This document shows positions 20,279-22,911 of a DNA stretch of 47,799 bases, one piece after another. The position numbers and the translations under genes are program-made. This DNA comes from Amoeboaphelidium protococcarum X5 (lineage: Eukaryota > Fungi > Aphelidiomycota): NCBI GenBank assembly GCA_023515725.1, contig JALDTO010000223.1, positions 1 to 47,799 on the forward strand, given 5' to 3'. The notes under the pieces were generated by a model. The model was not told the DNA's origin and did not search any database. It saw only the letters and a list, made by a program, of their open reading frames with translations. The first letter of the stretch is position 1; every line of letters starts with the position of its first letter.

Positions 20279-20338
20279 TCAGTTCTTACCATTCTTCCTG
20301 GCGACGAACAGCAGCAGGTCAATGACACGGTTTGCGTA
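20279..20338 (-). pseudogene. GAPDH: Displaced 3'-terminal fragment of GAPDH ([19 protein letters not shown])
   Basis: 57/60 nt identical to 22852-22911, including the TGA, plus ~15 nt of similar 3' flank. Confidence 0.95.
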
Positions 20339-22911
20339 ATGAATAAACTTTATTAATGTAGTTGCTATTTCACAAGTCTGATTAACCTGAAAATTGAAAT
20401 CAGCTGCCCGTACATTGAGAAGGATCTATGATCTTCTTGATTAAAGTCAGCAATTACAGCCGTCAATCGGAACATGGACAGATCTCATATGCGTTCAACT
20501 TGCTTCATGCCACGTATATTCGTCTTCGCTTCCCATCCACTTCTTCCACTTTGACACTACACTAATCATCATCATTGAGCTTTCGTTTATGCTTGAGCGT
20601 AGTGTCACTTATAGCGTTATACATTCCACCTAATCAACTTGTGACGACTACCACGATCTGCGGGGAGTTCAGCTTCTTTGTATTGTCGGCACTTAACGCT
20701 AGATAGACATTCTTCATATATATCTCTCTCTTTCTCTTTCTCTTTCTACCTCATAAATGACTTGAAGACATGTTAATGCTGTAAAGTAGTGTATAACGGC
20801 GATGTGATTGGTCACGATAACCGGCTGAATATTGATTTGTGCTTCATAACCTTTCGTATCACAATCTTCTCTCATCAAAATCATATTTAAGTATTCATTT
20901 TAACTGGTGAATTAATACTTTTAACGATAATTACAAAGCAATGGAAACATCCTTTGAAAGCGTATAGTTGCAGGGGAGAAATCTTGATTTAAGTAACGCG
21001 AGAGAAAATCCAGAGTATCACTCCGCAACAGGTGGTAGTTATATCGATAGTAGTGCAGCTGCTTCGTTGTCGGTTAAACTTGTTGAAGATATTGATTATC
21101 TCGCTCAACTGTTGAGTGTGGTCAGCTATAAAGATGAAGTGTTGCAATAATTCGATTAATGCATCCATGTAACTAATCGCGTTATCGCGTCTCTAAAGGG
21201 ACTTGATGAGAGCAGCGAGATTCAGCATACCTAACCGCATGTTATAAAGATTTTATCCACAGTTTCACGCTAGCTTTACGGGGCTGATAGTAGCTATATC
21301 TGGAATTAAAATTAGTTTATGCCGCGTAATACTGGTCTGAAAGTTGATGGGAATGCTTTCATGTGTCGAATTTTTGTGCCAAGAGATTGTAAACCTGATA
21401 TCATGCTGTCTTAGTCTGCATTGGCTCGTGCTGTTGGTCCGGTAGTTGAAATAAAACTAGATCATTTGCTCTAAGATTGTAACAATTCAAGGTTTGAAAA
21501 GTACGTCCGCCAAGGTGCTTTGTATGGGCTAAGCTTCATATAGCGCGTGTTTCCTATGATGCCTTCCAATGCTGTGTCTAAAATATTTGGCCCTGATTGG
21601 TATGTGTACGTGCCGTTGTTGTCGCATTAGTCTTTGTACATGCTTCGAATAGATTTGAGTGGTGTGTACATATCTGGGGACATCCGTGTCTGTTATTCGT
21701 CGTAATAGTCGGGGATTGACATGGCCAAGATGTTGTCTGCGTGGGTCATGTGGGCCTGTAGAGTCTCTGACTTTCTGAATGAACATGTGGATTTTCTGAT
21801 GAGTCCTTGCGCTAGATTTTGTTGGATCCCTCCACAGTCATTACTAAAGTTGTTTCCATCGCTGAACGTTGATCATCTAGTTGCACGCCCTTCGTTCTAC
21901 AATCCAATCTATGTTGATATTGTCAACAAGGCTGTCTATAAGTTGATTAGTGTATGGTCAGCTAATTTAAAAGGTATTGACAATAAGCTGCTGTCGGATC
22001 CCCTTTTGTGCGAAGGTTGGATGGTGGAGAGGCGCGTTTTACGAATGCCTTTATACGAGTCCTTTGATTTGCACCGCTGTCCACCTTAAGGTTTGAACTA
22101 ACTGATTGATGTTCTGAAGCAGTTAGTTTTGATACTCATGCACTTAAATCAAGTACACCAAATGTGTCATTGCGATATTCGAGCTGCCAATGTTTGCTGG
22201 AAGACTTCGAAAGATATTGTTCTGATTGATTATGATCTTGCAACTGTGATAGGTGAATTCAGTCCAAAGCCATAAAAAGCCAGGGATAGTGCGCCAGATA
22301 TATACGTTCATGAAAATCATGACTTGTGGCTTGTTGGAGTCATGATATTGCAGCTCACTCTGTCGAACTTTAGTTGGGATTTGGTTACAAATCGCAGAAA
22401 TAAGTTGATGCTCGGAAAGCGTCAGCTGGATTTGCAACTAGGCGGTCGTGTAAGATGGAAGGATGCTTTTGCTGCTTAGTACGCAGTCTTGACCAAAATG
22501 GCTGAAAATTGTTTGCAATTGCATTAATATCGCTGGTCACTTACTGATCTCAAAGGCTTTTTAGACAAGATATGATGAATGGCTTCCAATAAGCGAAGGT
22601 TGATTAATATAGCATAACGTTTCATAATACATTTAGCAGTTGGAAAGTTTACTGTTTAGAACTTTTTGTCAAACTTTATTTACGTCCGCATCTTGGAGAA
22701 CTTTATGCTGTAGAGCGAAATTTTGAAATCTATGTAAAAGTGAGAAATTTTGGCATATTTTTATGGTTAAACAGGGAGTTCAAGTGAAAGGCAACGATGC
22801 TAGAAACATCACCTGATTTCCGTTGTTATTATTAAGTCTTTCAAATTTCAATCAGTTCTTACCATCCTTCTTGGCGACGAACAGCAGCAGGTCAATGACA
22901 CGGTTTGAGTA
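20339..22911. mobile_element. Putative 3'-end-replacing homing element in GAPDH (nuclease-kinase gene + replacement GAPDH 3' end)
   Basis: Bounded by the duplicated GAPDH 3' ends (offset 2573 bp); junction at the conserved [12 protein letters not shown] motif; no TIRs or LTRs seen. Confidence 0.6.
20941..22575 (+). CDS. Intronless PD-(D/E)xK restriction-endonuclease-fold + protein-kinase-like fusion (544 aa; Crinkler/Spok-like architecture)
   Basis: KPDIML..VVEIKL..YVRQGALY (PD..ExK..QxxxY); kinase motifs AVYK, HCDIRAANV, LIDYDLA, HDLWLVG; open from ATG 20941 to TGA 22575 under TAR=Gln. Confidence 0.85.

Follow-up and report, generated by a model that had tools for sequence, protein, structure and literature searches.

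A nuclease-kinase gene within the 3′ end of a GAPDH gene of the aphelid Amoeboaphelidium protococcarum, bounded by a 72-nt direct repeat and a retroelement-like tail

We analyzed a stretch of 47,799 nt from Amoeboaphelidium protococcarum X5, a parasite of algae (contig JALDTO010000223.1, here C221); the full stretch is referred to as the window. In this stretch, one of the two GAPDH genes of the genome is interrupted near its 3′ end by an insert carrying a gene for a predicted nuclease-kinase protein. The contig belongs to a 23.6-Mb assembly (locus tags MIR68), and strain MP228 provided the second strain for comparison. All translations follow genetic code 6, in which TAA and TAG are read as glutamine. 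A preliminary description of the window had reported an intact GAPDH gene, a convergent gene of 544 amino acids and a stranded GAPDH 3′ fragment with its own stop, and had proposed that these make up a homing element analogous to the WHO elements of yeasts. The repeat and the reading frames agreed with the layout, whose parts are as follows (contigs C264, C98 and C192 are described below).

19756–20266, no strand assigned: native flank downstream of GAPDH, with a degenerate plus-strand frame ('Y' relic).
20267–20338, minus strand: stranded GAPDH 3′ end, the left repeat arm, with 19 codons, a stop and 12 nt of untranslated region (UTR); 94% identical to 22840–22911.
20339–20822, minus strand: module A, a 5′-truncated retroelement-like repeat, one of at least seven copies in the genome with a common 3′ terminus and differing 5′ ends.
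20823–20940, no strand assigned: spacer, presumed promoter and 5′ UTR of the nuclease-kinase open reading frame (ORF); covered by an RNA contig, with homology to C264 and C98 ending at 20822.
20941–22575, plus strand: nuclease-kinase gene encoding 544 amino acids (P0001), supported by the ORF, predicted folds and RNA contigs.
22576–22839, no strand assigned: right end of the insert; RNA contigs end at ~22626–22638 and the GAPDH poly(A) site lies at ~22805.
22840–22911, minus strand: right repeat arm, which is the working GAPDH 3′ end; 96% identical to the empty allele on C192.
22852–23937, minus strand: GAPDH coding sequence, supported by its translation and a spliced RNA contig, with an intron at 23741–23807.

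The two arms form a 72-nt direct repeat (20267–20338 and 22840–22911; 94% identity) whose copies are offset by 2573 nt, and between them lie 2501 nt (20339–22839) that include the convergent ORF. No second repeat of this kind was found in the same part of the window. The GAPDH coding sequence runs from 23937 to 22852 on the minus strand, and its single intron of 67 nt was borne out by the spliced RNA contig; in MP228, the gene is annotated with the domains Gp_dh_N and Gp_dh_C. The insertion point falls within the last 20 codons of the gene. Read on the minus strand, the right arm supplies the last 19 GAPDH codons, a TGA stop and 12 nt of 3′ UTR, and GAPDH is intact. The junction had been placed at a conserved GAPDH motif, and the repeat does begin at the Y codon of WYDNEFGY/SNRV. 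The left arm is the stranded copy of the GAPDH 3′ end; it has its own stop at 20279–20281, is continuous with the native flank, and differs from the working end by three amino acids, S>A (at the junction), K>R and D>N. The ORF at 20941–22575 is on the plus strand, convergent with GAPDH, and its 544 codons include 31 TAA or TAG codons read as glutamine and zero TGA. A serial replacement should have left another stranded GAPDH fragment in the stretch that separates the gene from module A; none lies there, and we rejected this possibility. A repeat search of the window found no terminal inverted repeat (TIR) or long terminal repeat (LTR) at the bounds of the insert. The preliminary description had likewise reported no TIR, LTR, transposase or reverse transcriptase; the statement held for the TIRs, the LTRs and a reverse transcriptase domain, but it overlooked the retroelement-like stretch at 20339–20822.

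The 544-amino-acid protein is annotated in databases as a hypothetical protein of A. protococcarum (P0001). Approximately residues 60–290 make up a PD-(D/E)xK domain with the motifs PD153, E170-I-K172 and Q191GALY195, and K172 was unchanged across 16 aligned sequences. A kinase-like domain follows at approximately residues 300–544, with HCD412, N417, D430-Y-D and APD. The structure model built from the 16-sequence alignment had a predicted local distance difference test (pLDDT) score of 83, and the N-terminal domain, when modelled separately, had a score of 87. Fold matches of the N-terminal domain included BpuSI (Z 10.6, root-mean-square deviation 3.5, 148 residues aligned), DrdV (Z 9.1) and HsdR 3h1t of Vibrio vulnificus (Z 6.9). 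Nearly all entries in this list were restriction-fold nucleases, with NucC, SduA and many type II enzymes at lower ranks. The C-terminal half matched solved protein kinases by profile (E 1e-11 to 1e-8), and its kinase fold was recovered by Foldseek with probability 1.00. When Pfam was run on stop-free pieces of the window ORF, it returned a weak kinase-loop match and nothing else; Pkinase matches above the Pfam cut-off were obtained in the paralogs. We concluded that the ORF is predicted to encode a PD-(D/E)xK nuclease joined to a protein kinase, with the catalytic motifs of both intact, and the earlier assignment to a restriction-fold nuclease and a kinase was confirmed at the level of these models and profiles. 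Residues 1–36 were disordered in the model, and the N-terminus is not signal-peptide-like. The linker stretch that precedes the kinase holds a single conserved cysteine (C294, in CWIPP).

The genome gave 26 matches to the nuclease-kinase gene at 35–54% amino-acid identity, and its family occupies at least 24 places there. The family alignment comprised 15 intact ORFs; several of the other copies are broken (C146, C192:63528 and C286:78130). The window copy has no homeolog partner and its nearest paralog is 48% identical; homeolog pairs within the family are 85–92% identical. Three of the four paralogs checked occupy the same place in both subgenomes (C155/C146, C233/C192 and C212/C192), and no partner locus was found for the fourth (C243). 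Flanking direct repeats were absent at ~20 paralog loci searched with 0.7–1 kb of flank and at 7 loci searched with 1.5–2.5 kb of flank. GAPDH 3′ fragments occur in the genome on C221 and on C98/C264 only, and none of them lies beside another family member. The preliminary description had expected homologues to sit between a housekeeping gene and a fragment of its 3′ end; instead, the other examined copies lie elsewhere, without target-gene fragments, which is the outcome that the description itself had named as contradicting its proposal. Outside A. protococcarum, only five related metagenome proteins were found in a search of 1.84 billion proteins, and two of these relatives, P0013 and P0014, have no GAPDH neighbour. 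We also noted that the genes are often clustered, as tandem or inverted pairs and triplets (C205:652340–660027, C233:13731–17943, C179:365017–369521 and C200:712306–723165), and that one subfamily (L035, L037–L039) has other residues in place of the PD and E of the nuclease motif but retains the lysine and the kinase motifs.

Module A contains a decayed minus-strand ORF, running from 20717 to 20400 with three in-frame TGA codons, that is homologous to the C-terminal part of a 241-amino-acid ORF on C233. Its 3′ terminus is intact, lies just after an AATAAA motif and abuts the stranded GAPDH fragment. Related copies on C233 (L054, 558546–561794), C249 (L055), C24 (L024), C136 (L025), C98 (L056) and C155 (L057) share one terminus (L054:1191–1193) and differ in their 5′ starts. 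In L054 numbering, 5′ ends of the family lie at 1742, 1490, 1405, 1383 and 1377, and at the protein level the truncation points vary from residue 108 to residue 205 of 241. Two young copies have target duplications, of 16 nt on C249 and 14 nt on C136. The 72-nt repeat of the GAPDH locus flanks module A and the gene jointly, not module A alone; it starts exactly at the retroelement terminus, as expected of a target-site duplication, and stops at the far end of the inserted DNA. No target duplication was found for module A alone or for the related segment on C264. The Pfam models RVT_1 and zf-RVT gave no match on the visible copies of the module A family, and its retroelement nature therefore rests on copy structure. 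RVT_1 matches do lie near zf-RVT matches on several contigs of the genome, as in elements without LTRs (non-LTR elements). We considered whether module A could be a gene of a high-copy long interspersed nuclear element with zf-RVT, and rejected this candidate because the Pfam models gave no match. Two further observations concern this family. The copy on C136 is 100% identical to that on C233 over 213 nt, which suggests recent activity, and the 241-amino-acid ORF opens with a knuckle-like motif (C-x2-C...H-x3-C) for which Pfam gave no match.

Contig C192 holds the second GAPDH copy, which has 95% DNA identity to the window copy and 99.3% amino-acid identity over exon 2. The contig is collinear with the window on both sides (17520–19943 and 22837–28000), lacks 20339–22839 and has one copy of the repeat. 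That is, the uninterrupted GAPDH allele for which the preliminary description had suggested searching was found. In the flank, identity between the window and C192 was 88% up to 19943, followed by strong divergence and a 135-nt gap in C192. Overall, C221 and C192 diverge by 5% in GAPDH and by 12–20% in non-coding DNA, indicating that they are homeologs or very old haplotypes. No empty allele was seen on haplotypes of the window type, and a scan of metagenomes for empty junctions, of this haplotype type or the other, gave no match. The empty junction of C192 was also present in one wild sample, a sediment metagenome that contained both junction types at similar depth.

A drive of the WHO type leads one to expect a diverged, resistant 3′ end in the filled allele, and here the comparison with C192 spoke against the proposal of the preliminary description. 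The working repeat was 96% identical to C192 and the GAPDH sequence upstream of it 94% identical, with no divergence step at the junction; over 22888–22932, a stretch that spans the junction, filled and empty alleles do not differ. The filled allele preserves both of the sequences that span the junction in the empty one. Because the insert is bounded by a direct repeat, the filled allele also contains every empty-allele site of less than 72 nt, and we saw no sign of immunity. The changes private to the stranded copy are missing from C192 and from the C98/C264 copies, and they look like decay, not like an older sensitive allele.

A 1.07-kb copy of window positions 19756–20822, comprising the flank, the GAPDH fragment and the tail, was found at C264:1033165–1034222 (L028), upstream of a PP2C phosphatase gene. 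The homeologous contig C98 (L027, ~1653100–1653690) keeps part of this copy, the left 440 nt being replaced by 1.6 kb of unrelated DNA. An 854-amino-acid ORF beside the C264/C98 copy was examined as a further nuclease candidate and rejected, since its motifs are those of a PP2C phosphatase. The window differed from the C264 and C98 copies by 18–28%, with 25–28% over the GAPDH fragment and module A (its flank is 77–82% identical to C264), and C264 differed from C98 by 9–11%. The greater divergence of the window from these copies indicates that the left junction arose at about the time of the subgenome split or earlier. Flank distances are about equal, however (23% between the window and C264, 25% between the window and C192), so that this age argument is not decisive. 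Two single sites in the repeat are also informative. A G at 22887/20314 is common to both arms of the window, where C192, C98 and C264 have A, which points to gene conversion between the two repeat arms. The position equivalent to 20271 is T in the stranded copy and in C98/C264, and A in C192 and the working copy; this pattern would slightly favor a C192 that was never filled.

Evidence on transcription came from two sequencing runs that are labelled as another organism and that fit a published dual RNA-seq study of an alga infected by this aphelid; we judged the runs to be RNA because their contigs are spliced. The GAPDH mRNA of the window copy has its poly(A) tail at ~22805, within the insert (the loose end of a T-run lies at 22804). 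Contigs over the insert covered 20305–22638 and 20378–22626, at a few percent of the GAPDH depth; these contigs give no strand. A gap separates them from the GAPDH 3′ end. The separate contigs and the gap indicated that the insert is transcribed independently of GAPDH.

We compared the window with the haplotypes of MP228, in which two megabase contigs (L076 and L077) both carry the filled, window-type locus. Contig L078 was rejected as a third haplotype and counted as redundant; it spans only the stretch in which L076 and L077 are the same. Over 13.6 kb, the window differed from L077 in every 250-nt bin except those of 19719–23145. Within 19719–23145 the two differed by one 1-nt indel and one substitution, both private to the MIR68 assembly and contradicted by all four runs. 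Three haplotypes from the two strains, which differ by 2–5% outside this island, were identical over the insert and over 0.55 kb on its left and 0.23 kb on its right, and the RNA and metagenome contigs over the insert were likewise identical. In the RNA strain the island ended on the right at 22933, but contig chimerism may have produced this edge, and we did not rely on it. Between strains, the nuclease-kinase protein differed by 0.2%, compared with 1.7–4.5% for the orthologs of another family member. Identity tracts of 0.75–5.8 kb between haplotype pairs are common in this region, and a rough estimate put the chance that a single 3.4-kb tract covers the insert at ~0.06. The sequence comparison points to a possible recent spread of the insert block, whether through a sweep, drive or gene conversion. 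Separately, from 14950 to 28577 the window is a mosaic with respect to L076 and L077, full-identity tracts alternating with 2–20% divergence, which indicates recombination or gene conversion among haplotypes.

The explanation that we prefer, with moderate confidence, is a composite, retroelement-associated insertion in which a long target duplication saved GAPDH and which carries a Spok-like nuclease-kinase gene. The insertion would have occurred by target-primed reverse transcription or by accompanying repair. An unusually long stagger would have produced the 72-nt duplication, which includes what remained of the reading frame, its stop codon and 12 nt of UTR, and which leaves GAPDH intact; in this essential gene, such a long-stagger event may be the sole survivable kind. 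The GAPDH copy now takes its poly(A) site from inside the insert, in which a complete, separately transcribed nuclease-kinase gene of ~2 kb is carried along. By analogy with Spok genes, the nuclease-kinase gene may have a selfish or toxin-antidote function. The present analysis gave no evidence that the nuclease-kinase cut GAPDH or made the insertion. As in non-LTR insertions, module A has the 3′ terminus of its family and a truncated 5′ end, the repeat starts at that terminus, and young copies of the family have clear target duplications.

Several observations weigh against this explanation. Young copies of the retroelement duplicate 14–16 nt, not 72, and, unlike in non-LTR insertions, four fifths of the inserted DNA belongs to an unrelated gene that points the other way. 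The ~2-kb gene segment is not a processed copy: it comes with DNA of its own on either side and shows no poly(A) remnant. To join gene and tail, an additional event would be needed, for example 5′ transduction, subsequent insertion or capture during repair. The genome holds no copy that could have served as source of the gene, the closest paralog being 48% identical. For the module A family we identified no master copy bearing a reverse transcriptase, and no reverse transcriptase domain or Pfam match. In addition, a passive, old insertion does not predict the identity of 19719–23145 across haplotypes that differ by 2–5%. If the explanation is nevertheless true, an essential and very highly expressed gene tolerated an insertion in its coding region through a lucky target duplication, and the locus is a natural mimic of the WHO layout produced by ordinary means, which warns against inferring homing from anatomy only.

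The interpretation given in the preliminary description stood in part; its central proposal, that the locus is a homing drive of the WHO type run by the nuclease, was not supported. Under this proposal, the nuclease-kinase would cut empty GAPDH 3′ ends, and repair would copy the gene by means of two homology arms, one being the GAPDH body and the other the stranded fragment with the flank. WHO elements are known from Torulaspora and Lachancea yeasts (Coughlan et al. 2020, PMC7282813; Osborne et al. 2026, bioRxiv 10.64898/2026.08.13.744650), and the layout of our locus matches theirs: the host is an essential glycolytic gene, a copy of its 3′ end ahead of the inserted gene preserves it, the former end lies stranded farther downstream, and insert-free alleles exist, here on C192. 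The stranded fragment and its neighbour were also copied at an unrelated, ectopic locus, comparable to the FBA1 fragments beside WHO10. The nuclease motifs are intact and the predicted folds agree, the insert is transcribed, the identical block of insert, 0.55 kb and 0.23 kb resembles co-conversion tracts, and the 0.2% protein difference between strains, as against 1.7–4.5%, fits as well. In WHO elements, however, alleles share 85% identity in the replaced half of FBA1, compared with 99% upstream, and this half confers resistance (PMC7282813), whereas the new GAPDH 3′ end is undiverged from the empty allele, with 96% identity in the repeat, 94% upstream and complete identity over 22888–22932. 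The filled allele also retains every empty-allele site shorter than 72 nt, the changes of the stranded copy appear to be decay and not an older sensitive allele, and the empty allele persists beside the gene in the genome, with both junction types in the wild sample. Other differences from WHO elements are that the duplicated piece is 72 nt instead of ~400, that there is one element with one fragment and no cluster, that the protein is PD-(D/E)xK with a kinase instead of an intein-like LAGLIDADG nuclease with a zinc finger, and that the other family members are not at GAPDH and lack host-gene fragments, three of the four checked keeping their place in both subgenomes. Moreover, the known function of the Spok architecture is killing and resistance, not site-specific homing (PMC6660238), and the joining of the stranded fragment to a retroelement 3′ terminus provides an ordinary origin for the duplication. 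On balance we regard homing as improbable. We likewise see only a slim chance that the locus represents an independent second class of 3′-end-replacement homing element, in a lineage that is sister to Fungi, maybe coupled to a Spok-like toxin-antidote function, with the identity island 19719–23145 as its co-conversion footprint. Such a unit would move between GAPDH alleles by break-induced gene conversion driven by its own nuclease-kinase, the stranded fragment serving as second homology arm.

Two other accounts are more plausible than homing, though we hold both as tentative. The filled state could be ancestral, C192 having been emptied later by recombination between the 72-nt repeats. In favor of this possibility, the left junction is copied at C264/C98 and goes back at least roughly to the subgenome split, no close paralog is available as a recent source, and loss or decay of one homeolog is common in the family (C146, C192:63528 and C286:78130); but the A of C192 at the 20271 site would demand a crossover within the first 4 nt of the repeat, and the about equal three-way flank distances leave the age argument undecided. 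A second possible, if somewhat doubtful, account is that a Spok-like killer-antidote gene swept recently through the window-type haplotypes, the island being a hitch-hiking footprint; its position in the tail of an essential gene would be incidental, or would guard the nuclease-kinase gene from deletion. This account is compatible with the composite insertion that we prefer. Spok genes are spore killers of Podospora (Vogan et al. 2019, PMC6660238), and for SPOK3 the HsdR structure 3h1t was reported as the best template for the nuclease domain (PMC6660238). Like SPOK3, our protein combines in one chain a PD-(D/E)xK domain with QxxxY and a match to HsdR of Vibrio vulnificus, followed by a kinase. 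Its family, like that of Spok, is multi-copy and patchily distributed, and it is fast-evolving with frequent broken copies. The identity island, the near identity of the protein between strains, and an N-terminus that is disordered over residues 1–36 and not signal-peptide-like would also fit a sweep. In contrast to Spok, however, the cysteine cluster between the domains (C-x3-C-x13-C-x5-H-x7-H) is missing, the protein is shorter (544 amino acids), the host is an aphelid outside Fungi proper, and the likeness described here is one of architecture and predicted fold. Sex and meiosis are undocumented here for A. protococcarum, and identity tracts are common regionally, the chance of ~0.06 for one over the insert being itself a rough estimate.

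If the preferred reading is right, the genome also documents a large family of Spok-like nuclease-kinase genes in an aphelid, outside Ascomycota, which bears on the age and spread of this architecture. The identity island across strains and an environmental sample hints at spread or strong selection. As a lead only, we note the Crinkler-type effectors of oomycetes and chytrids, which likewise pair a restriction fold with a kinase and are expanded in parasite genomes; unlike in Crinklers, no Crinkler header or signal peptide was seen in the 544-amino-acid protein.

Other features of the window lie apart from the GAPDH locus. The gene RPC2 (43852–47790) carries an intein of 442 amino acids (44083–45408, minus strand) at GEMERD/C...HN/C, with two LAGLIDADG-like motifs; Pfam Intein_splicing matched both ends slightly below its cut-off. 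The intein is also present in the homeolog (C192:529124–530410), and a second intein-bearing gene was found at C212:565327 and C264:836788. A direct repeat of 632 nt with 96% identity (39942–40573 and 45257–45888) is a copy of an internal piece of RPC2 over the intein site, comprising ~430 nt of extein and the first ~50 codons of the intein. The copy is located 3.3 kb downstream of the RPC2 stop and is not a 3′-end replacement. C192 holds a matching extra N-terminal intein fragment (533774–533974), which indicates that the 632-nt duplication predates the subgenome split. We rejected a ciliate origin of the DNA, as fungal-type genes are present in the window and the 544-amino-acid protein is annotated in A. 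protococcarum. A perfect direct repeat of 76 nt lies at the start of the contig (1–76 and 294–369).

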